Of a stretch of DNA of 64,000 nt, positions 29,807 through 59,883 are shown piece after piece. The position numbers were made by a program, and so were the translations under genes. The notes under the pieces were generated by a model. That model was given only the letters and a program-made list of their open reading frames with translations, was not told the DNA's origin and ran no database searches. The stretch spans positions 152,767-216,766 of the forward strand of contig NIVC01001976.1 in the NCBI GenBank assembly GCA_002269645.1. The letters run 5' to 3'. The stretch's first letter is position 1. Each line of letters begins with the position of its first letter. This DNA is from Macrostomum lignano. Taxonomy: Eukaryota.

Positions 29807-29944
29807 GCAGCAGCTGCACTCTCAGCTCTCCTGCTTGAGATGCCAGTCTGAGTGCTGCAGCAGCTGCACTCTCAGCTCTCCTGCTTGTTCTGTCCAACTC
29901 TAAGCATTAAGCAAGTCACCCACACGCATCTCGGATCATTCCAG

Positions 29945-30309
29945 GCTCTCAGACGACTCCCAGCAAGACAGGCGCTTGAGCTTTGAGCTGCATCAACTGC
30001 TCAGCAATGCGGGATTCACCGAGCAGAGAGCAAAGCGTCAGCAGATGCTGGCTGACTGGCTGCAACATGTCGCTCAAGTCCTCACACAGGATCGCAGGCA
30101 GATGACGGGCAGCTACGCAGAGGGCTGGGCCAACAGTCTGGTGCAAGTGAACGGCAGGACAGCTGCAGACTCGGACATTGACTGGACTGTGCTGGTTGCT
30201 GGGCAAGAGTTCCATTTGGAGGGTGGCTGCTATAAATTGTATGGTTCCTGCCAAAACGCCACTCGGCTGCAGGTCACGGAGGGCCACGCTCAGGTGGCAG
30301 TGGGAGCAG
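29945..30309 (+). CDS. Gene 2 exon 3: cGLR catalytic N-lobe
   Basis: TTCCAG|G ... GCAG|GTGAGT; 365 nt = 1+363+1; MTGSYAEGW...DSDIDW. Confidence 0.87.
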
Positions 30310-31012: not shown

Positions 31013-32595
31013 GCGGCGCCAGTTCCTGACCGACTTTCACGAGGGCATCGGCGGCCACTTCCAACTCCCGACGAAAATTCCCAAGGAGTCGACACTCACA
31101 GCCGGCTCAAGCGCTGGTGGTTGCTGCTGAGGGGGACCGAGCTGCGGACGCCGGCGCCACCGGAACTCCCTGCGCGACACCGCAGCACTAGCTGCCCGTG
31201 GTCGCCAGGAGTTAGCGAAATGGGCGACAACGCCTTCTCGCTGTTTCCGGACGCACGGAGCCCCCTGCAGCTAAGTCAAGTGGTTGCTGCTGCAGGAGTT
31301 CACCTTCACCTTCAAGTGCTCAAAGGGCGTCGACAAAGTGGAGGCAGGCGGCCTGTCGAGGATGCACGAGAGACGTTTTTTATCGTCAGCAACAGAGCTG
31401 CAGCCGCAGGTGTCCAACCGAGAGATACGGCAGGCGAAGCGGGCCGATCAGAAGCTCAAGCTGGTCATCGATGCACTGGAGAACGACAGCGCGACCCCGC
31501 CAAGTTGGTCCGACAGCGGACTGCGACACCTCAGCCGCATCTGGCGGAAGTTGCGGATTCAAGACGGCTTTCTCTGTCGCGCCTTTAACGATGCTGCGGG
31601 ACAGAGGGAGGTGTCCGTGATTCCTGAGTCGAAGTTCCTGACCGACTTTCACGAGGGCATCGCGGCCACTTTGGACCGGAGAAAATGGCCGACACGCTGA
31701 AGCAGACCGCGTACTGGCCTGGGCTGCAGAGCGACGCGGTGAGTTTCTGCCAGGAGTGCCAGACCTGCCAGCTGAAAAAGGCGCAGCACCGGCCAGCAGC
31801 CCCACTCGGTGAGATGCCGATCGGCAAGCCCTAGCAGACGGTGGCGATCGATGTTCTGAAGGTGCCGACATAAGACCGAGGCAACAGCTACCTGCTGGTG
31901 ATGCAGGACCAGTTCTCCAAGTTCCTGACCGCCATGCCGATGCCAGATCAGACCGCCAAGACCATCGCGGACGCTGCAGTGAAGGTCTTCTCCCTGCTCG
32001 GAGTCCCGTCTATCATCCACTCGGACCGGGGCGCGAACTTCGAGAGCGAGCTGTTCCAGGAGACGCTGCGAGCACTGGGCATCAGGAAGACGCGCAACAC
32101 GCCGTACCATCCGCAGGGAAATGGACTGGTGGAGCGCGGTAACAAGTCGCTGCTGCAGCTGCTGAGGCTTTTCGCCGAGACCGAGTCCAGCTGGGAGGAG
32201 CAGCTGTCGCTGGCGGTCCTGTCCTACAACTCCAGGGTCCACAGCTCAACCAAGGTGGCACCGCTGACGGTGATGACCGGCTACGACTCGGCGCTCCCAA
32301 CGAAGATGAGGAGCAGCATCAGCACCTACTTGGCACTACTGGGGTGGCGGCTGGCCTGGATTCGCGAATTCGTCAAGGAGAACTTGGTAGCCGCAAGACA
32401 GCAGCAGAAGGCGGCTCACGACAAGAAGGCGTTAGATCTGTTGCAGTTTCTCCAAGGCGCCGAGGTGCTGCTCAGCATTGAAATGTGGCGCTCGAAGCTG
32501 GCGCCCTATGCGCAAGCGGTTTGAAGCCCAGCCCGACTCTGACCAGCTCCGCCAGCAACCGGTGACCCACCAGGTCGTGCCGGAGCCCAGCCCAG
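31013..32595 (+). mobile_element. Degenerate gypsy RNaseH/integrase relic in intron 3 of gene 2
   Basis: LLQEFTFT...GLSR, YWPGL...CQECQTC, QDQFSKF, HSDRGANFES, YHPQGNGLVER. In-frame stops and frameshifts; no LTR seen. Confidence 0.88.
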
Positions 32596-32997
32596 GACTT
32601 TTTTTGCGTTTTCTCTTTTTATTGGGGGTAACAAAAGTACGAATAGTTACTTATCTAAACAGGTGTTAAGCGATCGAATAAATGGTCGAATGAATGACAG
32701 AGCTTTGAAACTACGCGCTTGTATTAAGTTTTCTTATCAAGTCTTTAAGTCCAATTCAATATTTTTCATGATTGCATGCCGGGTTGCTGCTTAAAAATAT
32801 GAAAATTGGGTGGAAACTTCTACCTTTTGGCCTTTTAGGTTTGAAAGGAGAGTAAATTTAATTTAACTGTCGAATCATCAGAACTGTATAGCAGCTGAGA
32901 GAAAATATTGTTGTTTTAAATGATATTTCATTGGATTCAAACCAACCCATCCTTTTCACTCGTCACAAAGCGACTCTCCGCTCACTGCGCCCTGCAG

Positions 32998-34484
32998 GCA
33001 GCCAACCTGCAGTGACAGCCACGGCGTGCGGTGTGCGGCCTGCACAGGACACGTGCTATGCCATTCGGTGCTGCAGAATTTTCTATGTGGACAGAATTAG
33101 AAAACAGACGGTAAACAGTGATGGGAAAATTCACCTCGTTCGGGCGACCAGACCGAGCTCGACCAACGAGCTCAGAGTGAGCTTCAGCTTCCAAGAGAAA
33201 CACATCATGAGACAGCTGAGCACAGTCCAGGGCCAGCTGTTCACACTCATCAAGTTCATCTTCAAGAGACACTTGCCGCTCACTCTGGACACACCTGGAC
33301 TCAAGACCTACCATGCAAAGACTCTGCTCTTCACAATGCTGGAGAAGCATGGCACAGATCCCGAAACTGAGGCTTGGCAGCCCCACAATCTGATCGCTCT
33401 GCTCAAGGAGTCTCTCGACATGATGCTGAGCTTCATCGACTCGAGCAGCTCGCCCGATGAGTGCATGCCGCACTTCTTCATGCCCGACGCTCCGCTCTAC
33501 TTCAAGAACGCTGGAATCGGCGGCGACTTCGACAACACGAAGGCGAGGGTTCGAGACCGACTTTGTGAGCTAAGAAGCGACATCGGCGGAGTGGTCGAGC
33601 AGCTGAGGAGTCTCGTGAGACCTCTGCAGTCAGAGAATTTCTACTTTCACCCGTTCACTCTGCTGCCTCTGACAGCGCCGCCTGCTGTCACGAAGATCAG
33701 GAAAGGACGTGACTATCCAGCTAGGTACTACAAGTTCGCAGACGTGTACAGTGTGGTGCACCAGTGTGTGAGCGAGCTGCAGTCGGAATCGAGCGACAGA
33801 GACACCCTGATGAGGCAGCTCAGTCTCCTTCGTGAGCTGAAGTGGTGCAAGTGCGCCGCCCTGTGCATGACCGCCATGGCGCATTTGAAGTTCAAGGACG
33901 ATAAGGAGGCTGGGAGACTCGCGATGAAGATGCGGGGACATCAAGTTGAGTCGGGGTTGAAGCCATTGGATATTCGAGATAAGGGTAGATACCAGTTTAG
34001 TGAGATAAAACTGCCGGAAGACTCAGACTGGGCGTGGAGGTTCTGCCTCCCCTGCGACTCTCCGCCTCGCTTCCCATTCCTTCCCGAGTTCACGCAGACT
34101 CTGTTCACAGCCAGACTGTCGCAGCCTCTCTCCTCCCACCTGTACGTGAACTTCCGCTGCCTGAGCTGGAGTCTCCAAGCTGAGCTGCTCCGCAATCGCG
34201 CACCTGCAATCGCATTCGATCATTGGATTGAACAGCTGCTTGGAGACCCGGACTTGGAGGAGCTGCTCACTCTGGCTCACTACAGCGACTGCCGCGAGCA
34301 CGTTGAGCTCAGCCTGCAGCAGATGGAGATGATCGAGAAAGAGAGACGCGTCGCCATGGAGACGCAGGACGAGGAGAAGATCGGCTGGGTCAGGCGGAAG
34401 CTGGAGAGACTTGATGCAGCAGCCGGAGTCCTCAAAAACGAGCCGCAAAGTCGAGGTCGGAAAAGGAAGGCTGAATCAGACTGA
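32998..34484 (+). CDS. Gene 2 exon 4: Mab-21 C-lobe plus helical tail
   Basis: CCTGCAG|GC; 1,487 nt = 2+1,485, open to TGA; same Mab-21 motifs as gene 1. Confidence 0.88.
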
Positions 34485-39508: not shown

Positions 39509-40815
39509 ATAGGTGATCATATATCTAATGTGACAGGTAGGTGATCATATATCAAATGTGACAGGTAGGTGATCATATATCTAATGTGACAGGTAGGTGA
39601 TCATATATCTAATGTGACAGGTAGGTGATCATATATCAAATGTGACAGGTAGGTGATCATATATCAAATGTGACAGGTAGGTGATCATATATCGACAGAT
39701 AAGCCACTCAACAAAAGTAGATACCGCAGAAACCATTGACTCCTATTGACCCCATTGACCCCATTGACCCCATTGACCCCATTGACCCCATTGACCCCAT
39801 CGACCTCATTGACCCCGTTGACCCCATCGACCTCATTGACCCCGTTGACCCCATTGATCCCATTGACCCCATTGAGCCCCTTAGAGTGAGTCTTCAATGA
39901 GTGAGTCACCAATGTGGCCTCAGCTCACAGTCACCAATGAGTGAGTCACCAATCTGGCCTCAGCTCACAGTCACCAATGAGTGAGTCACCAATCTGGCCT
40001 CAGCTCACAGTCACCAATGAGTGAGTCACCAATCTGGCCTCAGCTCACAGTCACCAATGAGTGAGTCACCAATCTGGCCTCAGCTCACAGTCACCAATGA
40101 GTGAGTCACCAATCTGGCCTCAGCTCACAGTCACCAATGAGTGAGTCACCAATCTGGCCTCAGCTCACAGTCACCAATGAGTGAGTCACCAATCTGGCCT
40201 GAGCTCACAGTCACCAATGAGTGAGTCACCAATCTGGCCTGAGCTCACAGTCACCAATGAGTGAGTCACCAATCTGGCCTGAGCTCACAGTCACCAATGA
40301 GTGAGTCACCAATCTGGCCTCAGCTCACAGTCACCAATGAGTGAGTCACCAATCTGGCCTCAGCTCACTCCAGTGTGCCAATTCCATGGCGCCAATAGGG
40401 CGCCAATGCCAGGCCGCAATGCAGGGGCAGCAGGAAAAGGGCGCTAATGCAAGGCCGCAATGCAGGGGCAGCAGGAAAAGGGCGCCAATGCCAGGCCGCA
40501 ATGCAGGGGCAGCAGGAAAAGGGCGCCAATGCCAGGCCGCAATGCAGGGGCAGCAGGAAAAGGGCGCCAATGCCAGGCCGCAATGCAGGGGCAGCAGGAA
40601 AAGGGCGCCAATGCCAGGCCGCAATGCAGGGGCAGCAGGAAAAGGGCGCCAATGCCAGGCCGCAATGCAGGGGCAGCAGGAAAAGGGCGCCAATGCCAGG
40701 CCGCAATGCAGGGGCAGCAGGAAAAGGGCGCCAATGCCAGGCCGCAATGCAGCGGCAGCAGCAAAAGGGCGCCAATGCCAGGCCGCAATGCAGGGGCAGC
40801 AGCAAAAGGGCGCCG
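39509..40815. repeat. 28-, 9-, 40- and 41-bp repeat cluster (unit B)
   Basis: 40-bp unit expanded to ~12 copies (39895-40368); 41-bp unit ~10 copies (40388-40815). Confidence 0.93.
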
Positions 40816-43800
40816 TGGCTGCGGTGCAGAGGCTGCATTTGAGCGCCGGTCCTCAGCGGCTGTCCTGGCGGGGTCGCCAGAAGGGCAGCTCAAAACTTCA
40901 GTGCTTCCGCAGCAGCCCCTCAGCTCAGCCCAGTGGATTCGCCCCTGCTGCAAAATGGCTGAGTCCCGCACTGCTCAAACTCAAACTGCTGCAGGATGGT
41001 GGAAGCAAGAGGAGAGCAAATGCTCTGTGTGGCAGGTGGGCGAGCGGTCAGCCCTGGCAACACGGGAGACATAGGAGCGGTCAGCCCTAGCAACACGGGA
41101 GACATAGGAGCGGTCAGCCATGGCAACACGGGAGACAGGAGCGGTCAGAACAAAAAAGTGTTCTGCATCACAAATTTTCATGGTTGAGTTTTATAACATA
41201 GTGAAAATATTTTCTTTGAAACTTCCCCTACCATAAACACTGAGCTCGTGCTCAGTTTCCACTGAAACTCAGTTGTGTTATGTAGTATTGTGAGCAGACA
41301 GTCAGCTGCCTCCGCCAATCTTCACAAGCTGCTCTTTGGAAACGAACCGGCCTGGGCCGCCTAAGCCTTCCACGTCTGCTGCGCTCCCCGGCCAGCTCAT
41401 CCATTGTTTTGGGGTGGACCAGAGGTTCCGCTTTCCAATGTGCGTTTCAGCCCCACTTCTGCCAGTACGCAGCCAAGTTCTACTCAATTGTCTGAGGGTA
41501 GGGATTACCTGCAGTTGCCCTGTCAGCCATCCGGATGTACGGGAATGAATTTCTGTGACGGCTGCGTAAGCTCCGTTTCCCTCCCAGCCTTCCCTCCAGC
41601 TCTCCCCTGCATTGTTTGGTCTTCCTACCTCTGACCCTCTGTCTCTTCATTTCATCTCAAGTACCGTGTTTGCTTGCTGCAGAGCCTCCTGTCTGCTTTT
41701 GCGAGTTCCGCCTTCTCTGCAAACTGCGAGTCTCTGCCTGCCGCTCCATCTGCAGATTGACGAGTTCAAAATCATAACTGGCAATCGGTGAGTCCTGCTC
41801 TGCCCTGCTTCAGTCTGCTGGGCTGGCATTGGAGTGAGCTGTCAGTTAGGCTTGCGATTAGGCTGGGAAAATGTGCTGACGCCCCCGGCGCTAACGAAGC
41901 CGTCACAGCCTCACAGTCACTTCAATATGGGGCCGGATGATTAGCAGAAGCTGACTGACCATCTCACATTCCTACAGATAACTGATAACCCAATTAACTG
42001 TTTAAATTGGTGCCACTTGAAACAACAGCGGTTATAACAAAGGATAATAATAATTAGAGACACGCAGACGATATACTACTGTCAGTAGGGTGAGCCGTCA
42101 CTTTGAACAGCCGGTCAGGTCGCTTATAAATATGAATAAAAAACAAAGCTGGCAGTGGGAGAAGCCCGGACCGGTGCGGCCGGCTTTGAGACTCGCCGCA
42201 CAGCAGGGGGCCGGCAGGTTGCATTTCTAACAGGCAACCAGCACACTGTAACACCCTGATTCTGTGATATTGTGCATGACTGTCGATTTGTCGACGGTAT
42301 TGTCTGTGTCTGCTGTCTACAACTGGATGATATTGTATTTTTCGAGCCATTAAATTTCTTCTCAGTCCCCAAAACGAGGACTCAGAAATGATAGGTTGAG
42401 GACTCAGAAACGATAGGTTGAGGACTCAGAAAGAAACGATTTTAGGACTTAAACGATTCAATCGTCTCATACGAGTAGAAGCAAGATGAATACAAAAGTG
42501 CAACAACGAGGCAACAAGTAGTTAAAAGTGGCAAAAATTGTCCAAAAGTTCATCACATTATTAACTGTGTAAATGTAGACAGTCACTCCTATGCAACAGC
42601 TGAATTAAAGCATTGCACTTGCTCCCATCCTGTTTGCGCTTTTCGAAAAAGAATCGCCTCAGAAGATATTTCCAACTGCCTCGACTCGGTTCTTCAATCG
42701 GTTTGGAGACAAGAAGTGCTTTGGTTTCACCTTGCAAATCTGTGCAATCTCATGAGGTCACGCAAATTGTTAAGATGAGGAGCCAGCACTGAATGTATGA
42801 CTCTGTCTGCCTCTGTCTATGCTAGTCTGGCCAAAATGAGATGGCCATATGCGTTTCCAACCCTCTTCTCCTGCCAATGCGCTGTCAAATTGTACTCATT
42901 GGTGTGCGGGCAGGGCCTTCTTTCCTGTGCTCTGTGCTTGCACCATCAGCCCTCCTGTCGTGCGGGAATGACTTTCTGTGACGGCTTTGTACGCTCGTTT
43001 CGACAAGCGCTCACTCTGCTGTGCATTTCTGTGCTTTGCTTGACTTTTGGCTTGCCATTCTCTTCCAGATTGCTTTCCAACCAGCGTTCAATTCCACTAT
43101 AGCAGCCCACCATAATTTATTTGGTCTCTTCTTTTTCCACAAGTACCGTGTTTGGTTATTGCAGAGCGCCCTGTCTGCTTTTGAGAGTTGTGCTTTCTCT
43201 GCAAGTCTCTGCTGCCAGCAGCCTTGCGAGTTCAGAACTGGCCATCGGTGAGTCCTGCACTGCCCTGCTGCAGTCTGCTGTGTTGGCGTTGGAGTGAGCT
43301 GTCGATTTCCCACTCACTGAATCCTTTACTCTGAATTCACAGACTGGCTTCTCCTTCTCTTCTCCCTCCTTCTTCCCCTCTTCTTTCCCCTGTTTTTCTC
43401 GCTCCCCTCTTTCTCCCTCGAGTTCAGGTTTACTCTGGGCTGAGACCTGACCACTGTGACTACTTAAACCGCTCAGTAGGAGAGATTTTAAGATCTCAGA
43501 CTGCACTGAGGCACAGTGTGTCAGCTCAGCTTCATCAAGTACAGCTTGGCGTGGCCGCTGCAACCGCAGACTCTCCGTTGCCATGCTGGGTGCACAGAGG
43601 CGAAGGCGGCGACTCAGCGCTCATGCTCGGGAGAGAAGTTTCGGCTGCTCAGGCCGGGGTGGTCGGCCTCGCATGAGACTACAGAGTGTGGGCAGCTGAG
43701 AGACTTTGGCAACCTGTTGCACATACGTTTGAAATGCATGCCTCTCTGACTGCAGCCGTGACTGACATCTGCCACTCTGACAACATCTAGGAATCATTAG

Positions 43801-43947
43801 GTATTCCCTTCACAAGTCTTCAAAATCACGACGCCACCCTTTTTCTCTCTGACCGTTTCTCTAAATCCATTAAAGTACTCGTAATAAACCAGGAGAAAAC
43901 TATTTACGTACCTTCTAGATGAAGCACGCATCAGCACACCAAGCGAA

Positions 43948-46900
43948 ATGAGCCAACAGGTCAGATCCGATGAGGCCGCCAAGACAGGAAATATCCAGGC
44001 ACTCCAACATCATCTGGACCTTCAGAGAGAGACAAACAGAAAATATCTTTTTTGCAAAAAATATTCTAAACTTGCCGCAAGAAAGGGTCAGTTAAAAGTA
44101 GTCAAGTTTCTCGTCTCTAAAGTCGCTGACCCAACAAGAAGAGATCAGTGCTGCATCGAGGCTGCAGAATCTGCTGCATACAATGATCAGTGGGATGTCA
44201 TCAAGATTCTCGTGTCTAAAGTCGCTGACAAAACAAAAAAATATGATTGCTGCATCGAGGCTGCCACATCTGCTGCATACAATGGTCAGTTAGAAGTGGT
44301 CAAGTTTCTCGTGCTAACAGTCGCTGACCAAACAAGAAGAGATCAGTGCTGCATCAAGGCTGCCAAATCTGCTGCATACAATGGTCAGTTAGAAGTGGTC
44401 AAGTTTCTCGTACCGACAGTCGCTGACCAAACAAAAAAAGATGATTGCTGCATCGAGGCTGCAAAATCTGCTGCATACAATGATCATTGGGAAGTCGTCA
44501 AGTTTCTTGTAGCGACAGTCGCTGACAAGATAAGAAGAGATCAGTGCTGCATCGAGGCTGCTGAATCTGCTGCTGACAATTACCAGTGGGAAGTCGTCAA
44601 GTTTCTCGTGCCGACAGTCGCTGACCAAACAAAAAGAGATCAGTGCTGCATCGAGGCTGCCACATCTGCTGCATACAATGGTCAGTTAGAAGTGGTCAAG
44701 TTTCTCGTGTCGACAGTCGCTGACCAAACAAGAGGAGATCAGTGCTGCATCAAGGCTGCCACGTCCGCTGCATCCAATGGTCAGTTAGAAGTTGTCAAGT
44801 TTCTCGTGTCGACAGTCGCTGACCAAACAAAAAGAGATCAGTGCTGCATCGAGGCTGCCACATCTGCTGCATACAATGGTCAGTTAGAAGTGGTCAAGTT
44901 TCTCGTGTCGACAGCCGCTGACCAAACAAGAAGAGATCAGTGCTGCATCAAGGCTGCCACATCTGCTGCATACAATGGTCAGTTAGAAGTGGTCAAGTTT
45001 CTCGTGGCGACAGTCGCTGACGAAACAAGAAGAGATCAGTGCTGCATCGAGGCTGCCACATCTGCTGCTGACAATGATCAGTGGGAAGTCGTCAAGTTTC
45101 TCGTGCCTGAAGTCGCTGACCAAATAAAAAAAGATCAGTGCTGCATCGAGGCTGCTGAATCTGCTGCTGACAATGATCAGTGGGAAGTCGTCAAGTTTCT
45201 CGTGCCTAAAGTCGCTGAGCAAACAAAAAGAGATCAGTGCTGCATCAAGGCTGCAAAAATGGCTGTAATCAGTGGTCAGTGGGAAGTCGTCAAGTTTCTC
45301 GTGCCGACAGTCGCTGACCAAACAAAAAGAGATCAGTGCTGCATTGAGGCTGCCACATCTGCTGCTGACAATTATCAGTGGGAAGTCGTTAAGTTTTTCG
45401 TGCCTAAAGTCACGGACCAAAAAAAAAGATATGATTGCTGCATCGAGGCAGCTAAATGTGCTGCACACAAAGGTAAGATAGAAGTCGTCAAGTTTCTCGT
45501 GCCGACAGTCGCTGACCAGACAAAAAGAGATCAGTGCTGCATCAAGGCTGCCACATCTGCTGCAAGAAATGGTCAGTTAGAGGTCGTCAAGTTTCTCGTG
45601 CCTGAAGTCGCTGTCCAAACAAAAAGATATGATTGCTGCATCGAGGCTGCCACATCTGCTGCAATAAATGGTCACTTAGAAGTCGTCAAGTTTCTCGTGC
45701 CGACAGTCGCTGACCAAACAAAAAGAGATCAGTGCTGCATCAAGGCTGCTAAATCTGCTGCAAGAAAAGGTCAGTTAGAAGTCGTCAAGTTTCTCGTGCT
45801 GACAGTCGCAGACCAAACAAAAAGAGATCAGTGCTGCATCAAGGCTGCTAAATCTGCTGCAAGAAATGGTCACTTAGAAGTCGTCAAGTTTCTCGTGCTG
45901 ACAGTCGCAGACCAAACAAAAAGAGATCAGTGCTGCATCAAGGCTGCAGAATCTGCTGCTGACAATTGTCAGTGGGAAGTCGTCAAGTTTCTCGTGCCGA
46001 CAGTCGTTGAACAAACAAAAAGAGATCAGTGCTGCATCAAGGCTGTCAAATCTGCTGCTGACAATTGTCAGTGGAAAGTCGTCAAGTTTCTCGTGCCGAC
46101 AGTCGTTGACCAAACAAAAAGAGATCAGTGCTGCATCAAGGCTGCGAGAATAGCTGTAATCAGTGGTCAGTGGGAAGTCGTCAAGTTTCTCGTGCCGACA
46201 GTCGCTGACCAAACTAGAAGAGATCAGTGCTGCATCGAGGCTGCTGAAACTGCTGCTGACAATTATCATTGGGAAGTCGTTAAGTTTCTTGTGCTGACAG
46301 TCGCTGACCAAAGAAAAAGAAATCAGTACTGCATCCAGGCTGCACAATATGCTACAGAAAAGAATCAAGGAGAAGCGGTTGATTTTCTCATCTCGTGTCT
46401 CTCAAGTCCGGATCAGAGAGCGAATCTCCGTATCCATTGCGCAGTCACGGCTTGCTCTCGTCTTCACGAAGATGTCGTTGCCTCCCTCGGCCTCGAGCCC
46501 GAATGGCTCTTCCAATCCAGCAACATCCTCAACTTCACCGCAGCAATGGCCATCGAAGGCAGGAACTCTGTTCTCAAAAAACATTCTCTCGAATGCAGCC
46601 AGCTCACATCACACAGCTGCTCCGTCTCTCCATCTCTCAAAGACACGTCGCTCTTGCTGTCACACTGATCAATGATGAGCGAGTCAGCACAGAGCATGTC
46701 GATCTACCAGACAGCACTGGAGCCACTGCTCTCATGCTGGCAGCTGATGCAGGTCATCACGAGCTCATTGAGAAACTCATCGATCTCAGTGCGTCAGTGC
46801 GTGCTGAAGACAGTCAGGGTCGGACTGCTCTGTCACGAGCGTGCGAAGCCGGTCACGTGCGAGCAGCCAAGGCTCTGATGGGCAGAGGAGCAGATGCGAG

Positions 46901-46993
46901 TCATCGAGACGGTCAGGGTCTGACGTGCGCGCAGGTGGCAGAGCGATATGAGCAGCGGGAGATGCTGCGGCTACTGGATCCCATTGGAGCGGG
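43948..46993 (+). CDS. Gene 3 exon 1: 23 variable ankyrin-like repeats plus ~3 canonical ankyrin repeats
   Basis: ORF 43948..46668 continues into ORF 46395..46997 after a missing A in an A-run at ~46576; phase-2 donor GG|GTGAGT (intron starts 46994). Confidence 0.85.
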
Positions 46994-47754
46994 GTGAGTG
47001 TTGGTCTAGGCAAAACTGAGCCAGGTCATGTTTGCAAGCGAAGAAGACTACGATTGAACAGAACCATGCTCACTGGCAAAGGCAAATGTACAAACTGTTA
47101 GGGGTAAAACGATAGCGCGCAAGAATGACCAGTCACGGTAGGGAGAGAGAGAGAAAGTGACAGTGAAACAACGTGAAAACCAAAGTACAACCCCAACAGT
47201 GAGTGAGGCGGGAATTTCGCGAACATCTTTTTATGATATTATTTTTTAAGCTAAGCACTAGAAATCTAGTGCCCCCTTACGAGGCGCACAACAAGCAATC
47301 AAAGAACCAATTCCTTCTTCTGTTTTATAAATCACCTTATTCGAGTAAAATTGTCACGGACAAAGATGTTTGCTAAGAATCTCTATTTTGTGAAAGTAAC
47401 AAAAATACGAAAAAAATACAACAAAAAAGCTTTCACAAAGATAACACGCATTTGTCCTAATAGAATGTATAACTCAGACCGCAAGAATCCCCCCAAATAG
47501 CAAGCTTCCTCCGGTAGCATGCACCCCCTTCCTAAATAGCAAGTACCCCCAGATGGAGAGCAACCCAGACAGAAAGCATCCTACTCCCCCCCCCCCCCCA
47601 AGATACAAAGCATACGCCCAATTACAACAGCAAGCACCCCCCAAACAATAGCAAGAACCCCAAAATACAATCCTAAGTATCCCCCAGATAGCATACCCCA
47701 AGATGGCAAGATCCTTAGCAATAATCCTTGGTTCATCAAGTGCAGTAATCCTTG

Positions 47755-49090
47755 TGTTATGCTTTTGGCGGCTTCTCTTCTGGCTCGAGATAGAACAAGG
47801 ACTTCCCTGGGTGGTCGGGTAGGTCTTGATATCCCACCGCTGCCACCAGTGTGATGCTGTGGCTTTTTGCCTTGTGGATCCCACCAATGTAACCAATGTA
47901 ATGGCCTTGTGGATCCCCGTCTCTATGGTGATTACTGCTGTTGCCTACTACTTCCTCTGTCTGTCCTCGCCATCTAGCACGGCCGGTAGCTGGCCTGAGT
48001 GGTCTAGCACTATGGTCCGAATTAACCCCTCTTAGTCTCCACTGAGTACCGTTAGATAATAACCGAGTAATGGTAGTTGGGTTGCTGCCACCTTGTAGGT
48101 CTACAGGTGATATCCTCGACAGGTTACCCCTAGGTAGGCCTACTGATAAGTAGAAAATAAATAAGACAACACAAGTCAGTTAAACGTTTATTAATGTGAG
48201 TAACGGTCACAGGCCGATCCTAAAATATCGTTTAGTAGCTCAACTGGTGTCGCAGTAAACGCCCTAAGCTGTACTGTGCGTCAGTTGATGTTGCCCAACA
48301 GTGTAGGTTGTAGGCCACGAGACCAGGTCCAGACGGTGTTGAAGGTCTGGCGAGCTGCTGACACAAAGACCTGCGGCAGTCTTAATGAGCAAATGGCAGC
48401 TGCAACAAAGGTTTGTTAGCAGGTTATCCCTAGGGAAAACGTCTAGCGATCTGCCTAAGCTAGTTCGTCTAGGAAAAGCATCTAGGAATCTAGCCTTTGC
48501 TCGAAGCCAAGCAGGCGGTCTCCGAACGGATCGAGATCGTCTCCTGAACGAGGATGGTCTCTTTGGGCCTTCACCTATTCTGTATTTATACTAAAATTCG
48601 GGGGTCTCAGGGCCAATGGGAAGCTCAGAGGCAGTTCCGTGGCAGATCCCATGGCAGTTCCGTGGACTACCCGGAGCCAGGAGCGATCTTGGAGATGTCC
48701 ATAAGACATCTGCCTCATCATGCAGCCTCCGCATGGCCTGCTGGTACACTGCTTGCATGTTGCCGCATGCAAGGAGTGCAACCAAGACCCACGAAATCCT
48801 ACCCGGGCGGAGAGCTATGCTCTCACTCCCGCTGACTAAAAAAGCCTGTACTAAAGGAGAAATATCCCACTGACTAATGTTTCTATTTTTAGCCCATTGC
48901 AGACTGCGCCAGGGGGAGAGGGGGGGAGAGTTTCTCTCCCTGTCCCGCGACAGCTGCACACCTGAGCCTGCACAAGGGAAGAGGAGAAAGGGACAGCCCT
49001 ATGCCCAGCTCCCACTGCTGCAGCCCAAGCACTAACTGACTAAGAGGGGATCCCAGGAGCAGCCTATGCTAGCTATGCTGGATCACCACA
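47755..49090. mobile_element. Solo-LTR-like element (1,336 bp) in the 24-bp satellite
   Basis: TGTTATG...TCACCACA with 4-bp TSD CTTG (47751-47754, 49091-49094); absent from unit A. Confidence 0.82.
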
Positions 49091-50905
49091 CTTGGTTCAT
49101 CAAGTGCAGTAATTCTTGGTTTATCAAGTGCAGTAATCCTTGGTTTATCAAGTGCAGTAATCCTTGGCTTATTAAGTGCAGTAATCCTTGGCTTATCAAG
49201 TGCAGTAATCCTTGGTTTATCAAGTGCAGTAATCCTTGGTTCATCAAGTGCAATAATCCTTGGTTCATCAAGTGCAATAATCCTTGGTTCATCAAGTGCA
49301 ATAATCCTTGGTTTATCAAGTGCAATAATCCTTGGTTCATCAAGTGCAATAATCCTTGGTTCATCAAGTGCAAGAATCATTGGTTTATCAAGTGCAGTAA
49401 TCCTTGGCTTATTAAGTGCAGTAATCCTTGGCTTATCAAGTGCAGTAATCCTTGGTTTATCAAGTGCAGTAATCCTTGGTTCATCAAGTGCAATAATCCT
49501 TGGTTCATCAAGTGCAATAATCCTTGGTTCATCAAGTGCAATAATCCTTGGTTTATCAAGTGCAATAATCCTTGGTTCATCAAGTGCAATAATCCTTGGT
49601 TCATCAAGTGCAAGAATCATTGGTTTATCAAGTGCAGTAATCCTTGGTTCATCAAGTGCAATAATCCTTGGTTCATCAAGTGCAATAATCCTTGGTTCAT
49701 CAAGTGCAAGAATCATTGGTTTATCAAGTGCAATAATCCTTGGTTCATCAAGTGCAATAATCCTTGGTTTATCAAGTGCAATAATCCTTGGTTCATCAAG
49801 TGCAATATTCCTTGGTTCATCAAGTGCAATAATCATTGGTTCATCAAGTGCAATAATCCTTGGTTCATCAAGTGCAAGAATCCTTGGTTTATCAAGTGCA
49901 ATAATCCTTGGTTCATCAAGTGCAATAATCCTTGGTTCATCAAGTGCAAGAATCATTGGTTTATCAAGTGCAATAATCCTTGGTTCATCAAGTGCAATAA
50001 TCCTTGGTTTATCAAGTGCAATAATCCTTGGTTCATCAAGTGCAATATTCCTTGGTTCATCAAGTGCAATAATCATTGGTTCATCAAGTGCAATAATCCT
50101 TGGTTCATCAAGTGCAAGAATCATTGGTTTATCAAGTGCAATAATCCTTGGTTCATCAAGTGCAAGAATCATTGGTTTATCAAGTGCAATATTCCTTGGT
50201 TCATCAAGTGCAATAATCATTGGTTCATCAAGTGCAATAATCCTTGGTTCATCAAGTGCAAGAATCATTGGTTTATCAAGTGCAATAATCCTTGGTTCAT
50301 CAAGTGCAATAATCCTTGGTTTATCAAGTGCAATAATCCTTGGTTCATCAAGTGCAATATTCCTTGGTTCATCAAGTGCAATAATCATTGGTTCATCAAG
50401 TGCAATAATCCTTGGTTCATCAAGTGCAAGAATCCTTGGTTTATCAAGTGCAATAATCCTTGGTTCATCAAGTGCAATAATCCTTGGTTCATCAAGTGCA
50501 AGAATCATTGGTTTATCAAGTGCAATAATCCTTGGTTCATCAAGTGCAATAATCCTTGGTTTATCAAGTGCAATAATCCTTGGTTCATCAAGTGCAATAT
50601 TCCTTGGTTCATCAAGTGCAATAATCATTGGTTCATCAAGTGCAATAATCCTTGGTTCATCAAGTGCAAGAATCATTGGTTTATCAAGTGCAATAATCCT
50701 TGGTTCATCAAGTGCAAGAATCATTGGTTTATCAAGTGCAATATTCCTTGGTTCATCAAGTGCAATAATCATTGGTTCATCAAGTGCAATAATCCTTGGT
50801 TCATCAAGTGCAAGAATCATTGGTTTATCAAGTGCAATAATCCTTGGTTCATCAAGTGCAATAATCCTTGGTTTATCAAATGCAGTAATCCTTGGTTTAT
50901 CAAGT
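49091..50905. repeat. 24-bp satellite, ~75 copies with higher-order structure
   Basis: ATCAAGTGCAATAATCCTTGGTTY; variant monomers recur at 240-bp and 552-bp spacing. Confidence 0.97.
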
Positions 50906-51755
50906 TGATGTAACCACGTTTTGATCGCGGGGTCATGTCAGGAAATTTTTCGAAATGTCCCCGATCCCCTTTGACCCACTGGGCAGAGTTGTCGAGACTG
51001 GACCGGGTTCCTGACCAGGCGCACTGACTCCCGCTCTGTAGCGTTCCCTTGCTGTCCCTGTTCCGTCTTCCAATCAGTCGCACTTGCCCTTCCGGAGCCC
51101 CCTTTTTGTGCATCTCGCCTGCCTCCCCATTTCTCATGCGCCACACCCCATGCATCATGTGCTTCTCATGTTTCCCATCTTTTTGTCAACGTTATAGCAC
51201 GGTTTTCTTGCGCTGTCCCTTCTTCATCCCGTGCCTACTTAGAGTATTGTTTGTGCTCCTCGTCACCCCATCTCCTTTTAGAATCCCAAATGGTGACGCA
51301 AGGCTCCAGACCCCTCCCTCACCCCGATGACTCGATCATCACCCTCCTCTTGCGCAACCTTTTCTCATGCTATTGTTCTCTTATCAAGATTTCTCATGCG
51401 ACACCCACCCCTCCTCCGCCTCTATTGTTCTCTTTTTTAATTTTTTTGTTCTCCTTTTAGCAAATATTGATAATTATCACATTTTTCCTGATTTTCTCGT
51501 TCTTTTGTTCTCGTTTTCGCACCCAATTAGCACCCCTCTCTCAATGTTTGCTCTGCTATTGTTCTCGGTTCTCCCCAATTATTGGCTTGTACTCGTACCT
51601 TCGGTCCTACCTTTGGACTCGTTTCGTCTATAAGACGAACCTATGCCGGCCCGCGGTCCAGCATGCTCAGCATCACCTGAGCTTCATCAGCGCCTCGTCG
51701 CTTCAGCGCATCGCCACTTCACTACCTGCCTGTCTGCAGTCAACAGCTCACTCCA

Positions 51756-51794
<39 letters not shown>

Positions 51795-52684
51795 AGCTGC
51801 CGGTGAGTTCGTGTACTGATTTGTACTCTAATTGCCTTTGCTTATCCGGGGTTTGCTTATTTCCCATTGCTTGACTAGAGGACTGAGCCAATTGTGTACC
51901 GTACTTTGCTGTATTTTACTCAATAGTGAAGCCGCCGAATCGCCTGCTTATTTCGCCTAAGGGCCTAATTATTAACAATTACTAAACTCCTCCTTATTCA
52001 CTCTTTCACCACCATTTCACTCATGAGTTGCTGAGCCTTTCTCCCTGGGTGAAAAAGCATAAGGAAGTTTGGGTAAGCCAATGGCCTCTCCCTGTGAAAC
52101 GCCCGCCTGTGTGTGCGTGCTGCGGGTCCGTGTGTGTCAGTAGAGGGGATTAGCGATTTGTGGCACAGAATGGCAGCAGGGAGGTTGCAACCCCATGCTG
52201 ACGCGTCCCTTCGCCCTGAGCAATCTGAACTTTAGCTAGCACATGTTCACCTCACACTACTCTTAGTAATTGAAGCCGCAAGTCCGCCTCATTCACAGCC
52301 ACAAAGGATCTCCTGCTGAGAAATGCTCCAGATTGATCCCAGAGTTCCCGATTGTGCCCAAAGCAAAGTCCCTGTACTCGGTTGCATGCGCCTCCCCTGT
52401 TAGCTTAAATCCTCTGGTAATCAATCCAGACAGGGCTCTAGCCTGATAAGGTCTGGTCATAGATCCAGGTGAGCCCGGTCATATAGAGTGGTGGCAGCCA
52501 CTCGGTCACGCCAATTATTGCACCTTGGCTGCAGGTGGGGCCCATGTGGGTCCTCGGCCCTCTGGTTTCGAGGTCCTTCAGGTCATTCAGGGCAAAGGTC
52601 CTTCAGGTCATTGCCCGGTCATAGGCAGCCTACGGTCATTGCTCCTCCCTGCGAAGCGGACGGTCATCAAGGGCGATTACATCA
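50906..52684 (+). mobile_element. Solo-LTR-like element family A (1,779 bp), orthologous to 22518-24450
   Basis: TGATGTAACC...GATTACATCA; TSD AAGT (50902-50905, 52685-52688). Confidence 0.83.
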
Positions 52685-53078: not shown

Positions 53079-53132
53079 AAGCCGAGAGGCCCGGCGGGCA
53101 GCCGCTCACGGCTTGGATTCGCGCCTCCATCG
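53079..53132 (+). CDS. Gene 3 exon 2: 54-nt linker exon
   Basis: CATTGCAG|AAGCC...CATCG|GTGAGT; phase 2 to phase 2, open. Confidence 0.7.
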
Positions 53133-53241
53133 GTGAGTCTGACCGGTTCGGCTTTCACTGCCGCATTGCGCCTTCTAACAGGCTGGCAGCTTGGGGCAGA
53201 AATTGCAGCGAAACTCAGCAGGGTTGAGATTGGGTTGGACT

Positions 53242-53431: not shown

Positions 53432-53486
53432 GTTCTGACCATCCAACTCTGAGCAATTCACCCACACGCATCTCGGATCATTCCAG

Positions 53487-53857
53487 GCTCCCAGACGACT
53501 CCCAGCAAGACAGGCGCCTGAGCGAGGAGCTGCATCGACTGCTCAGCGATGCGGGATTCACCGAGCAGAGAGCAGAGTGTCAGCAGAGACTGGCTGACTG
53601 GCTGCAACAAGTCGTTCGAGTCCTCACACTGGAAGGCGATCGCAGGCAGATGACGGGCAGCTACGCAGAGGGCTGGGCCAACAGTCTGGTGCAAGTGAAC
53701 GGCAGGACAGCTGCAGACTCGGACATTGACTGGACTGTGCTGGTTGCTGGGCAGGAGTTTCATCTGGAAGGTGGCTGCAAAGGAAGATCTGGATCCTGCC
53801 GAAACGCCACTTGGCTGCAGGTCACGGAGGGCCACGCACAGGTGGCAGTGGGAGCAG
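53487..53857 (+). CDS. Gene 3 exon 3: cGLR catalytic N-lobe
   Basis: TTCCAG|G ... GCAG|GTGAGT; 371 nt = 1+369+1, open; GS and DSDID motifs intact. Confidence 0.87.
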
Positions 53858-53980
53858 GTGAGTGAGGCTGGGTTCATCATCAGAATGCTGAGATCCGCAT
53901 GCAACTGGAAGCCCATTAACTTTGCTCAAATATAAATTCGCAACCGAGTGGTGCCCAGCTTCCAGCAGCTTCTGTGACTG

Positions 53981-56283: not shown

Positions 56284-56390
56284 TCCAATATACTAAAAAT
56301 GAAAATTTTGCTTGCAATCGATTATCTCCAGAATGGCTTAAACGATTTTCATGAGACTTGCAGTGTTCGATCAGAAATTTTCTCGTGACG
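56284..56390 (+). mobile_element. Helitron-like 5' fragment
   Basis: TTCCAATATACTAAAA...AATGGCTTAAACGATTTTCATGAGACTTG resembles the 5' ends at 24600 and 28842; absent at the equivalent unit B position (~30985). Confidence 0.4.
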
Positions 56391-56417
56391 GTACATGTGT
56401 TCTCGTTCCGGAGTCGC

Positions 56418-57950
56418 TGCGGCGCCAGTTCCTGACCGACTTTCACGAGGGCATCGGCGGCCACTTCCAATTCCCAACGAAAATTCCTAAGGAGTCGACA
56501 CTCACAGCCGGCTCAAGCACTGGTGGTTGCTGCTGCAGGAGTTCACCTTCACCATCAAGTGCTCAAAGGGCGTCGACAAAGTGGAGGCAGGCGGCCTGTC
56601 GAGGATGCACGAGAGACGTTTTTTATCGTCAGCAACAGAGCTGCAGCCGCAGGTGTCCAACCGAGAGATACGGCAGGCGAAGCGGGCCGATCAGAAGCTC
56701 AAGCTGGTCATCGATGCACTGGAGAACGACAGCGCGACCCCGCCAAGTTGGTCCGACAGCGGACTGCGACACCTCAGCCGCATCTGGCGGAAGTTGCGGA
56801 TTCAAGACGGCTTTCTCTGTCGCGCCTTTAACGATGCTGCGGGACAGAGGGAGGTGTCCGTGATTCCTGAGTCGAAGTTCCTGACCGACTTTCACGAGGG
56901 CATCGCGGCCACTTTGGACCGGAGAAAATGGCCGACACGCTGAAGCAGACCGCGTACTGGCCTGGGCTGCAGAGCGACGCGGTGAGTTTCTGCCAGGAGT
57001 GCCAGACCTGCCAGCTGAAAAAGGCGCAGCACCGGCCAGCAGCCCCACTCGGTGAGATGCCGATCGGCAAGCCCTAGCAGACGGTGGCGATCGATGTTCT
57101 GAAGGTGCCGACATCAAACCGAAACAACAGCCAAGACCAGTTCTCCAAGTTCCTGACCGCCGGGCCGATGTCAGATCAGACCGCCAAGACCATCGCGGAC
57201 GCTGCAGTGAAGGTCTTCTCCCTGCTCGGAGTCTCGTCCGTCCTCCACTCGGACCAGGGCGCGAACTTGGATAGCGAGCTGTTCCAGGAGACGCTGCGAG
57301 CACTGGGCATCAGGAAGACGCGCACCACGCCGTACCATCCACAGGGAAATGGACTGACTGATGCAGCTCGGCAACAAGTCGCTGCTGCAGCTGTTGAGGC
57401 TGCTTGCCGATACCGATTCCAGCTGGAAGGAGCAGCTGCCTCTGGTGGTCCTGTCCTACAACTCCAGGGTCCACAGCTCAACCAAGGTGGCGCCGCTGAC
57501 GGTGATGACCGGCTACGACCCGGCGCTCCCGCCGAAGGTGAAGAGCAGCATCAGCACCTACTTGGCACTACTGGGGTGGCGGCTGGCCCGGATTCGCGAG
57601 TTCGTCAAGGAGAATCTGGTAGCCGCCGGGCAGCAGCAGAAGGCGGCTTACGACAAGAAGGCGTCAGATCTGTTGCAGTTTCTCCAAGGCGCCGAGGTGC
57701 TGCTGAGCATTGAGATGCGGCGCTCGAAGCTGGCGCCCTATTTGGAGCCGGGCTGGACGGTGCTTGAGCAGGGCGGTCACTCTGTGTGCATCCGCCGCGT
57801 CTTCGGCAGCCGGCCGATTCGCTGGGTGCACGTGAACCGGCTGTGCAGGCCGTTTGAAACCCAGCAGCCCGACTCTGAGCAGCTCCGCCAGCCGCCGGTG
57901 ACCCACCGGGTCGCGCCGGAGCCCAGCCCAGGACTTCTTTGGTGTGAGCA
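56418..57950 (+). mobile_element. Degenerate gypsy RNaseH/integrase relic, orthologous to 31013-32595
   Basis: Same motifs and the same in-frame TAG (AAGCCCTAGCAG) as the unit B copy. Confidence 0.88.
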
Positions 57951-58449
57951 TTGAGTGAGAGACCGAGACTGGTGCGGACAGTTCTGTTATTGCATCTGCC
58001 GTAGCTGTTTGCTCTTATTGTTCTTTCGTTCCACTGTTTGATTTAGTCACCTCATTTGCGTTTTCTCTTTTCATTGGGGGTAACAAAAGTACGAATAGTT
58101 ACTTATCTAAAGAGGTGTTAAGCGATCTTTATTATGGTCGAATGAATCACAGAGCTTTGAAACTACGCGCTTGTCTTAAAGTTTTCTTATCAAGTCTTTA
58201 AGTCCAATTCAATATTTTTCATAATTGCATGCCGGGTTGCTGCTTAAAAATATGAAAATTGGGTGGAAACTTCTACCTTTTGGCCTTTTAGGTTTGAAAG
58301 GAGAGTAAATTTAATTTAACTGTCGAATCATCAGAATTGTCTAGCAGCCGAGAAAAAAATATTGTTGTTTTAAATGATATATCATTAGATTCAAACCAAC
58401 CCCTTATTCACTCGCCACAAAGCGACTCTCCGCTCACTGCGCCCTGCAG

Positions 58450-59883
58450 GCAGCCAACCTGCAGTGACAGCCACGGCGTGCGGTGTGCGGCCTGCACAGG
58501 ACACGTGCCATGCGATCCAGTGCTGCAGCAGTTTCTGTGAGGACAGAATTAGAAAACTGATTGAAGACACATATATTCCAGTTCACCTCGTTCGGGCGAC
58601 CAGACCGAGCTCGACCAACGAGCTCAGAGTGAGCTTTAGCTTCCAAGAAAAACACATCATGAGACGGCTGAGCACAGTCCAGGGCCAGCTGTTCACACTC
58701 ATCAAGTTCATCTTCAAGAGACACTTGCCGCGCACTCTGGACACACATGGACTCAAGACCTACCATGCAAAGACTCTGCTCTTCACAATGCTGGAGAAGC
58801 ATGGCACACATCCTCAAAAGAAGGCTTGGCAGCCCCACAATCTGATTGCTCTGCTCAAGGAGTCTCTCGACATGATGCTGAGCTTCATCGACTCGAGCAG
58901 CTCTCCCGATGAGTGCATGCCGCACATCTTCATGCCGACGCTCCGCTCTACTTCAAGAACGCTGGAATCGGCGGCGACTTCGACAACACGAAGGCGAGAG
59001 TTCGAGACCGACTTCGTGAGCTTAGAAGCGACATCGGCGGAGTGGTCGAGCAGCTGAAGACACTCGTGAAACCTCTGCACTCAGAGAAGTTCTTCTACTT
59101 TCAACCGTTCACTCTGCTACCCCTGACAGCGCCGCCTGCTGTCTCGGAGATCAGGAAAGGACGTGACTATCCAGCTAGGTACTATAAGTTCGCAGACGTG
59201 TACAGTGTGGTGCACCAGTGTGTGAGCGAGCTGCAGTCGGAATCGAGCGACAGAGACACCCTGATGAGGCAGCTCAGTCTCCTTCGTAAGCTGAAGTGGT
59301 GCAAGTGCGCCGCCCTGTGCATGACCGCCATGGCGCATTTGAAGTTCAATGACTTTAAGGAGGCTGAGAGACTCACGATGAAGCTGCGGGGACATCAGGT
59401 TGAGTCAGGGTTGAAGCCATTGGATATTCGAGATAAGGGTAGATACCAGTTTAGTGAGATAAAGCTGCCAGAAGACTCTGACTGGGCGTGGAGGTTCTGC
59501 CTCCCCTGCGACTCTCCGCCTCGCTTCCCATTCCTTCACGAGTTCACGCAGACTCTGTTCACAGCCAGACTGTCGCAGTCTTACTCGCAGCCCCACCTGT
59601 ACGTGAACTTCCGCTGCCTGAGCTGGAGTCTCCAAGCTGAGCTGCTCCGCAATCGCGCACCTGCAATCGCATTCGATCATTGGATTGAACAGCTGCTTGG
59701 AGACCCGGACTTGAGGAGCTGCTCACTCTGGCTCACTACAGCGACTGCCGCGAGCACGTGGAGCTCAGCCTGCAGCAGATGGAGATGATTGAGGAAGAGA
59801 GACGCGTCGCCATGGATACGCAGGACGAGGAGAAGATCGGCAGGGTCAGGCGGAAGCTGGAGAGACTTGATGCAGCGGCTTGA
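58450..59883 (+). CDS. Gene 3 exon 4: Mab-21 C-lobe plus shortened tail (two 1-bp deletions)
   Basis: CCTGCAG|GC; CCC to CC at ~58936 and GG to G at ~59715 relative to genes 1 and 2; ends KLERLDAAA*. Confidence 0.75.

Follow-up and report, generated by a model that had tools for sequence, protein, structure and literature searches.

cGAS-like receptors (cGLRs) are sensors of nucleic acids or of unknown ligands, and their ligand-binding surface is normally part of the enzyme itself. Most other families of pattern-recognition receptors have reportedly been lost in flatworms. According to Li et al. 2023, ankyrin or TPR modules occur in some cGLRs, and the set present in most flatworms is limited to Mab21-like proteins (PMC9980059). 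Tables of that survey hold several ankyrin-cGLRs of Macrostomum lignano, including PAA67649.1, PAA86972.1 and PAA45980.1, and in its main text ankyrin fusions figure only as one of the minor domain architectures and as domains that might interact with ligands (PMC9980059). The M. lignano constructs screened there (#89-91) begin inside the enzyme region or shortly before it, and the ankyrin N-terminus was thus apparently left out of the screen (PMC9980059). Near-identical repeats are also found in fungal NLR proteins (Dyrka et al. 2014, PMC4986451), for instance Podospora HET-E/NWD, where the criterion used was that repeats be at least 85% identical across 100 residues or more. Here we describe a locus of M. 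lignano, a free-living flatworm, in which arrays of near-identical 33-residue ankyrin-like units precede a predicted cGLR-type nucleotidyltransferase. It lies in a stretch of 64,000 nt ("the window") of contig NIVC01001976.1, assembly Mlig_3_7 (GCA_002269645.1), and our subject is the repeat-bearing first coding exon of one gene, gene 3, at 43948-46995.

Three paralogues (genes 1, 2 and 3) lie in tandem on the + strand, and comparison of the window with itself revealed a tandem segmental duplication of ∼26 kb. Each paralogue encodes 8-23 near-identical 33-residue units, followed by a linker, two to three canonical ankyrin repeats, a predicted Mab-21/cGLR nucleotidyltransferase and a long C-terminal tail. 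We consider it probable that the region is the repeat part of exon 1 in an M. lignano-specific, tandem ankyrin-cGLR family, with unit-shuffled arrays that would serve fast-diversifying innate sensors. Gene 1 corresponds to the M. lignano protein PAA62074.1 (BOX15_Mlig034155g1; P0002), which matches the window at 100% over 878-1243 and 7290-8954 (tblastn); the best protein matches of the window all come from M. lignano. Gene 1 has four coding exons. Exon 1 codes for a cap, the repeat array, the linker and the canonical ankyrin repeats, and exon 2 is a micro-exon of 54 nt. Exon 3 holds the nucleotidyltransferase core, with the motif MTGSYxEGWANSLVQVNGRTAADSDIDWTV, and exon 4 encodes the Pfam domain Mab-21_C and the long tail. 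The same four exons are found for genes 2 and 3, all within the window. The parts of gene 3 are as follows.

43948-46995, + strand: coding exon 1, with cap, 23 units, linker and canonical ankyrin repeats, located by tblastn with P0002; donor GTGAGT at ∼46995.
43948-44124, + strand: N-terminal cap, which in translation includes a degenerate first repeat (…KYSKLAARKGQLKVVKFLVSKV).
44125-46401, + strand: array of 23 in-frame 99-bp units, the last of them (unit 23) degenerate.
46402-46994, + strand: linker and two to three canonical ankyrin repeats (Ank_2, E = 4e-19); frame broken at ∼46578 by a 1-nt deletion in an A-run.
53080-53133 (approximate), + strand: 54-nt micro-exon, of which the second half alone is in frame; another indel is possible.
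53485-53859, + strand: nucleotidyltransferase-core exon, …MTGSYAEGWANSLVQVNGRTAADSDIDWTV…, with the GS and DxD motifs.
58446-59868, + strand: last coding exon, with the Mab-21 C-terminal domain and the long tail; 1-nt homopolymer deletions at ∼58935 and ∼59713.

In exon 1 of gene 3, the open reading frame (ORF) at 43948-46668 carries on in another frame as 46395-46997. The cap is 92% identical to that of gene 2, with a ratio of nonsynonymous to synonymous substitution rates (dN/dS, or omega) of 0.45. In the last exon, the likeness to gene 2 stops 42 nt short of the gene 2 stop codon.

This domain order, N-terminal ankyrin repeats and then a Mab-21/cGLR nucleotidyltransferase, is also that of the ankyrin-cGLRs of Li et al., and one of our paralogues (P0014) is PAA67649.1, which stands in their domain table as a cGLR with Ank_2. 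A non-exhaustive look at Li et al. 2023 found no description of near-identical 99-bp units, of variability restricted to certain sites, of differences in unit number between paralogues or of a repeat without TPLH. Literature searches on Macrostomum combined with cGLR/cGAS/STING, ankyrin or Mab-21 turned up nothing that describes the family beyond the supplementary tables of Li et al. Ankyrin-cGLR fusions, one paralogue included, are already catalogued; the behavior of the arrays appears to be undescribed.

Tandem Repeats Finder reported the array of gene 3 as a 99-bp repeat at 44086-46343 (22.8 copies, 86% matches, score 2982) and the paralogous array of gene 2 at 18056-20258 (22.3 copies). 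We set the phase of the unit as A1 D2 Q3 T4 K5 R6 D7 Q8 C9 C10 I11 E12 A13 A14 K15 S16 A17 A18 Y19 N20 G21 Q22 L23 E24 V25 V26 K27 F28 L29 V30 P31 T32 V33. In-frame stepping by 99 nt then gave 23 units for gene 3 (from 44125) and 22 for gene 2 (from 18095), the numbers counted in a first-pass annotation made from the letters of the window. Across five paralogues, the arrays of P0001 and P0003 among them, unit number is 8 (gene 1), 22 (gene 2), 23 (gene 3), 19 and 9. The block duplications described earlier for gene 2 were also confirmed: units 4-7 recur as 8-11 with 0 mismatches in 396 nt, and units 3-5 nearly recur as 18-20 with 2 mismatches in 297 nt. Unit 9 of gene 2 (18887-18983) is 97 nt long and differs from unit 5 by two 1-nt deletions only (GGGG>GGG and CC>C), which split the array into two ORFs.

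Variation within the unit was quantified as entropy over 42 units of genes 2 and 3. It is highest at ten positions, with these values in bits.

Position 19: 2.23; position 15: 1.85; position 21: 1.66; position 32: 1.62; position 31: 1.57.
Position 23: 1.13; position 22: 1.12; position 20: 1.08; position 12: 0.94; position 16: 0.85.

The first-pass annotation had placed the variation at position 15 and positions 19-23. It named the right positions, and all the residues and motifs it listed occur: K/T/E/I/R at position 15 and, at 19-23, YNGQL, VEGHL, DNDQW, YNDHW, VKGHL, RNGQW, DNYKW, ISGQW, HKGKI, INGHL and DNCQW. Its list was incomplete, however, as positions 31, 32, 12 and 16 vary too. Amino-acid identity between units is 0.86-0.94 over the framework versus 0.47-0.50 at the ten variable positions. 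Not all of these positions change independently. A glycine at position 21 goes with L23 (codon TTA), and a residue other than glycine (D, Y or C) goes with W23 (codon TGG; Fisher p = 7e-7). The G-L and W flavors of the unit still fall into separate clades when the tree is restricted to framework codons. The coupling and the separate clades thus point to two old unit lineages, not to independent hypervariable sites, and part of the "hypervariability" is the presence of two unit flavors.

The proposal that the units are ankyrin-like was amply supported by Pfam, with Ank_2 matching at E = 5e-94 (309 bits versus a cutoff of 27.3) and Ank_4, Ank and Ank_3 also passing their cutoffs. No gap is needed to align the units with consensus-designed ankyrin proteins (4o60, 4qfv) or with 6ne1, a NACHT-ankyrin protein of fungal origin. 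In this alignment, A17-A18 stands opposite A-A, G21-Q22-L23-E24-V25-V26 opposite G-H-L-E-L-V, A1-D2 opposite A-D, and V opposite G27. Likeness to canonical ankyrin repeats and to designed ankyrin repeat proteins (DARPins) hence extends over the 33-residue period, the gap-free alignment, the A-A, G-x-L-E-V-V-K-x-L-L and A-D motifs, and the solenoid. One earlier statement, that CCIEAA replaces the usual TPLH, turned out to be three residues off: T-P-L-H faces E12-A13-A14-K15, and C9-C10 faces the "x-G" of the hairpin. The unit is without both the TPLH motif and the hairpin glycine, and position 15 is K/T/E there. Compared with canonical ankyrin repeats, M. lignano has E-A-A-[K/T/E] for TPLH, C-C for the hairpin "x-G" and, in the predicted fold, a helix for the beta-hairpin. 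The contact positions of the canonical hairpin (2, 3, 5 and 33) are conserved in M. lignano, whereas canonical framework positions 6, 9, 10 and 15-17 vary. Via the gap-free alignment, we take unit positions 19, 20 and 32 to be the DARPin library positions 13, 14 and 26 of Binz et al. 2003.

An AlphaFold model of the 906-residue ORF had a mean predicted local distance difference test score (pLDDT) of 89. In this model, as read by DSSP, the unit is predicted to consist of a 17-residue helix A (3-19), a 3-residue turn (20-22), a 10-residue helix B (23-32) and a 3-residue loop. DSSP found no beta-hairpin finger in the model; the canonical hairpin region is predicted as an extension of helix 1. The sequence fits such a long helix, since the TPLH cap and the hairpin glycines are gone and a stripe of small residues is present. 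This conserved stripe of helix A is formed by C9C10, A13A14 and A17A18 (i, i+1, i+4, i+5, i+8, i+9). Such small-residue stripes are of the kind that packs neighboring helices. The Cys-Cys pair at positions 9-10 is invariant in 42 of 42 units (e.g. 44149-44154), and a single stripe of the solenoid thereby carries at least 45 aligned cysteines, whose role may be no more than that of small residues in packing. Foldseek matched the model best to the 24-repeat domains of ankyrin-1 and AnkB, to NOMPC and to DARPins (E = 2e-11 to 1e-6), with template-modeling (TM) scores of ∼0.35, which is expected where superhelical curvature differs. The repeat is predicted, on this model, to be an ankyrin-derived solenoid of an unusual, divergent subtype. 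An ankyrin variant without TPLH and, by prediction, without the hairpin is of interest for repeat-protein design.

Positions 12, 15, 16 and 19 are spaced i, i+3, i+4, i+7 and lie on one face of helix A, a stripe other than that of the small residues. Of the remaining variable sites, 20-22 make up the turn in the predicted fold, 23 opens helix B, and 31-32 close it. Judged by helical periodicity and residue chemistry, the variable positions would be located at the surface. The first-pass annotation had assigned them to the end of helix 1 and the following turn. This assignment calls for revision: in the AlphaFold model they occupy a stripe of an extended helix A and the A-B turn, and positions 31-32 make up a second patch where helix B ends.

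The same structural matches invite a different explanation, in which the solenoid is a spacer, a spring or an oligomerization platform that positions or autoinhibits the nucleotidyltransferase, and surface variation is tolerated. The closest structural relatives are, after all, the 24-repeat membrane-binding domain of ankyrin and the 29-repeat NOMPC spring, and unit number ranges from 8 to 23 with no obvious change in the remaining protein. Yet a pure spacer would not be expected to focus change on one helical stripe, with omega of at least 1 there versus 0.3-0.65 elsewhere, and the inner solenoid face of ankyrin-R/B binds many targets (4rlv is one such complex). We regard a purely structural role as improbable. 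As systems, the ankyrin-R/B (24-repeat) and NOMPC (29-repeat) domains resemble the M. lignano arrays in being solenoids of similar length, and are the best structural matches. They differ in that identity is 16-18%, and in that each of their repeats has diverged from the others and keeps its position across species, with no turnover of near-identical DNA units.

We then return to how the arrays of genes 2 and 3 compare as DNA. In-register identity is 0.875 versus 0.85-0.87 out of register, and a positional match is kept only at units 1, 2, 3 and 5 (91-95% identity), perhaps also at unit 17. Signatures of the 10 variable residues are distinct in 13/21 cases in gene 2 and 21/22 in gene 3, with 0 common to both; as full units, those of gene 3 all differ from each other. 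The two genes nevertheless have four 19-23 motifs in common, out of 10 and 14 distinct ones, as well as unit lineages, the latter also on the framework-codon-only tree. The claim that the array differs completely between adjacent paralogues is accurate for the 10-residue signatures and overstated otherwise, given the corresponding units 1, 2, 3 and 5 and the common motifs and lineages. The arrays of genes 2 and 3 are different arrangements and derivatives of one unit pool. In P0001 and P0003, DNA identity of units is 0.86 and 0.90 within a gene versus 0.70-0.81 between genes. Higher identity within than between genes is a signature of concerted evolution by intragenic duplication and exchange. 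Unequal crossover among 99-bp units, the process originally suggested, is supported by the block duplicates, the loss of register in the array interior, the excess of within-gene over between-gene identity, and unit numbers of 8, 22 and 23.

Sequence next to the arrays behaves differently. The upstream flanks of genes 2 and 3 (15093-17917 and 41108-43947; 2.8 kb) are 98.3% identical, versus 92-95% for coding parts (dS 0.06-0.15) and 87.5% for the arrays. Either the flank was homogenized recently, or the coding parts took in sequence from other paralogues.

Could unit order, unit number and the perfect 396-bp duplicate stem from mis-assembly of a neopolyploid genome? Mlig_3_7 is a Canu assembly of PacBio continuous long reads (CLR), polished with Pilon; it is redundant, and REAPR scored 64% of its bases as error-free (PMC5730564). 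The 0 mismatches in the 396-nt duplicate and the homopolymer indels within the array would also fit an artifact. However, the 2.3-kb array is shorter than typical PacBio reads, and three differently organized arrays stand on one contig, each between unique flanks. Family members on other contigs have the same architecture with other unit numbers, and the units of gene 3 are all distinct, which is not a product of collapse or expansion. An assembly artifact is very improbable in our estimation.

The closest parallel for such behavior is found in the ankyrin, TPR and WD arrays of fungal NLRs, which likewise show very similar repeats, variation at a few inner-helix positions, variation in repeat number, shuffling and concerted evolution (PMC4986451). 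In the M. lignano family, variation in repeat number and shuffling are seen between paralogues (8, 22, 23, 19 and 9 units). A further link is the NACHT-ankyrin protein 6ne1, a fungal protein among the best Protein Data Bank (PDB) sequence matches of the units. The resemblance has limits. Fungal NLRs join a NACHT or NB-ARC NTPase to C-terminal repeats, whereas the M. lignano proteins join a predicted cGLR to N-terminal repeats; no Pfam match to NACHT or NB-ARC was found in the family proteins, where the partner is a Mab-21-type nucleotidyltransferase. On average, the amino-acid identity of unit pairs reaches 0.80 within gene 2 and 0.74 within gene 3 (DNA, 0.89 and 0.85; framework only, 0.94 and 0.86), so that many single pairs of units exceed the 85% used for fungi but the mean does not. 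In fungi, positive selection and allelic polymorphism of repeat number have been demonstrated (PMC4986451), whereas the comparison in M. lignano is between paralogues.

Selection at the variable positions was assessed in several ways. Pairwise Nei-Gojobori pN/pS was 3-5 at positions 15 and 19-22. Because pairwise values are distorted at position 23, where the codons for L (TTA) and W (TGG) are two steps apart via the synonymous TTG, we added tree-based counts; both kinds of count ignore recombination among units. For 38 distinct units of genes 2 and 3, tree-based dN/dS was 1.13-1.67 in the variable classes (test for an excess over 1, p = 0.03-0.43) compared with 0.33-0.39 in the framework, and the numbers of nonsynonymous and synonymous changes differed between variable class and framework with Fisher p ∼1e-6. 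Within-gene trees pooled over five paralogues gave an omega of 1.56 (95% interval 0.88-2.74) at positions 15 and 19-23 and of 0.65 (0.50-0.84) elsewhere. By gene, omega at the variable sites was 3.7 in gene 2, 2.8 in P0003, 1.5 in gene 3, 1.0 in gene 1 and 0.6 in P0001. The dN/dS check that had been proposed for these sites came out mixed: they differ strongly from the framework, but the pooled value is not significantly above 1. The variable sites evolve at or somewhat above the neutral rate. This is compatible with diversifying selection, and is accounted for just as well by relaxed constraint at surface positions.

Neutral turnover with no repertoire function offers one such account. The repeats would be young, substitutions would accumulate where the fold tolerates them, and genes 2 and 3 would be decaying copies of gene 1. 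An omega compatible with 1 at the variable sites speaks for this account, and so does the setting: tandem and simple repeats make up 15% of the M. lignano genome (PMC5730564), and minisatellites abound in the window. On the other hand, P0003, an independent paralogue, repeats the pattern of variable sites (omega 2.8). Decay of genes 2 and 3 is suggested by at least five frame-breaking 1-nt deletions, by the fact that both are unannotated, which makes pseudogenes possible, and by a high dN/dS between them outside the array (0.4-0.85). All the frame breaks, however, are 1-nt homopolymer deletions, two in unit 9 of gene 2 and the others at ∼46578, ∼58935 and ∼59713 of gene 3; such deletions are the typical leftover error of Pilon-polished PacBio CLR sequence that is multi-copy. 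When frames were followed, no premature stop or nonsense substitution was seen in ∼2,400 codons of genes 2 and 3. The 2.3-kb array of gene 3 is an uninterrupted ORF whose shifted frame has stops in nearly every unit, and the catalytic core is identical in the three genes. The submitted annotation left out transcripts that overlap repeat annotations (PMC5730564), which would explain why gene 1 alone is annotated. Consensus errors are more likely to account for the frame breaks than real pseudogenization, and neutral turnover as a whole strikes us as possible but unlikely. If it were true, the locus would be just another gene cluster that duplicates rapidly, in a genome very rich in repeats.

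Identification of the enzyme domain draws on several searches. Pfam Mab-21_C (PF20266) passed its cutoff in the exons of the window and in 9/9 family members (best E = 1.7e-8). When the enzyme region was searched against the PDB by sequence and by profile, it matched cGAS, cGLR1 and MAB21L1 only, at weak E values of 0.09-1, which is suggestive. The enzyme region of gene 1 is 31% identical to PAA86972.1 (cGLR #89 of Li et al. 2023) over 353 residues that include the core (E = 8e-39). A profile search of 1.8 billion representative proteins returned 349 relatives; those that are distant combine Pfam Mab-21 with Mab-21_C and, in some cases, with TPRs. The motif GSY…DSDID is invariant in genes 1-3 and the family. 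For the third acidic residue, a candidate, placed without a reliable structural alignment, is the D in …PAQDTCHAI…. Taken at sequence level, the domain is predicted to be a divergent cGLR/Mab-21 nucleotidyltransferase, with predicted catalysis. Some relatives of the domain occur in other combinations: P0131 has ankyrin repeats, Mab-21_C, more ankyrin repeats and a caspase domain; P0124 has WSC, ankyrin repeats, Mab-21_C and a RING finger; and P0038, from M. lignano, has a protein kinase, Mab-21_C and ankyrin repeats.

Several observations weigh against a family of fast-diversifying sensors. Besides the points on decay given above, dN/dS at the variable sites is not significantly above 1 and is at or below 1 in P0001 and gene 1. 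Positions 31-32 sit at the opposite end of the helix pair from 19-23, so the variable positions may not form a single binding face. Pfam Mab-21 (PF03281), the core domain, gave no direct match in the family members, and an AlphaFold run on P0005, with 14 paralogues as alignment, modeled the ankyrin part well and the nucleotidyltransferase part at a pLDDT below 50. Protein searches found no independent near-identical copy of gene 2 or 3, the best for gene 3 being 74% identical. Finally, the M. lignano cGLRs that were screened are absent from the main text of Li et al. (PMC9980059).

On balance, we still favor the sensor family. The arrays change as whole 99-bp units, or blocks of them, are duplicated, lost and exchanged, which leaves each paralogue with a unit number, a unit order and a collection of signatures that are its own; unequal crossover, replication slippage or gene conversion would be the cause. 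The mode of action might be as follows. One continuous face of the superhelix would be lined by the variable stripe and turn. This face may bind a ligand, most likely a protein, and binding may control the attached nucleotidyltransferase and, through it, a nucleotide second messenger. The family would then be one of germline-encoded, fast-diversifying innate immune sensors, similar to the fungal NLRs with ankyrin, TPR or WD arrays, with a cGLR enzyme in place of the NOD module. The label "sensor", used from the start, is plausible given the predicted fusion to a cGLR nucleotidyltransferase; the "combinatorial ligand-recognition repertoire" is something that we infer only. Broader still is the idea of an NLR-like system on a cGLR chassis, with dozens of ankyrin-cGLR genes in M. 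lignano, arrays diversified by shuffling and by selection on the stripe, and paralogues, possibly individuals, recognizing different pathogen proteins and responding through nucleotide second messengers. We hold it to be doubtful, and give next to no credence to somatic diversification of the arrays.

A long solenoid of fast turnover ahead of the enzyme suggests a second route to cGLR specificity, namely modular recognition of proteins as in fungal and plant NLRs. It would represent an independent, convergent use of repeat shuffling and site-restricted variation in an animal. Were the NLR-like system real, M. lignano would offer the first case of a cGLR joined to a repeat domain that recognizes proteins and evolves rapidly. 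The system lends itself to experiments, with M. lignano in use as a transgenic laboratory model.

The other two genes are arranged like gene 3. Their parts are as follows.

17918-20876, + strand: gene 2 coding exon 1, with 22 units at 18095-20270.
29093-29146, + strand: gene 2 micro-exon (SPEARQAAAHGLDSGLHR).
29943-30311, + strand: gene 2 nucleotidyltransferase-core exon, located by tblastn with P0002.
32994-34484, + strand: gene 2 last coding exon, with Mab-21_C (Pfam) and the tail.
About 0.5-2.1 kb upstream of the window (L001 10001-11575), + strand: gene 1 exon 1, with 8 units (P0002 match).
881-1243, + strand: gene 1 nucleotidyltransferase-core exon, a 100% match to P0002.
7296-8957, + strand: gene 1 last coding exon, with Mab-21_C and the tail (Pfam, P0002 match).

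In genes 2 and 3, the micro-exon was not present within 1.2 kb downstream of exon 1 and was found further downstream. Intron 1 measures ∼460 nt in gene 1 (L001 11576-12034), ∼8.2 kb in gene 2 (20877-29092) and ∼6 kb in gene 3, and the extra length consists of repeats.

Mobile elements occupy the introns as well. The last intron of gene 1 contains the coding region of a Ty3/gypsy-type long terminal repeat (LTR) retrotransposon (2045-5740, - strand), whose three overlapping ORFs encode a zinc-knuckle gag, aspartyl protease, reverse transcriptase, RNase H and integrase. Paralogous retroelement remnants lie at 30971-32524 and 56351-57954 (+ strand), in matching introns of genes 2 and 3, with an integrase core at 31898-32524. 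With ∼94% identity between the remnants, the element was already inserted when the 26-kb segment was duplicated. Downstream of the arrays, an element of ∼0.8-1 kb occurs as two direct copies, 23539-24334 and 51592-52371 (94% identity), and one inverted copy, 61219-60172 (79-84%).

Minisatellites with periods of 22-50 bp crowd the introns and spacers (86-825, 9415-10000, 10705-11660, 12721-13251, 14343-14879, 21632-22517, 26045-26693, 39895-40368, 49091-50905 and others). Their copy numbers differ between the duplicated segments, with 37 versus 76 copies of a 24-bp repeat and 14.8 versus 3.8 of a 50-bp repeat. They yield long spurious ORFs on both strands, such as 49066-50913. Antisense ORFs within the array of gene 3 (44983-45468 and 45874-46368) and the long ORFs over the 24-bp minisatellites were considered and dismissed as by-products of periodic sequence.

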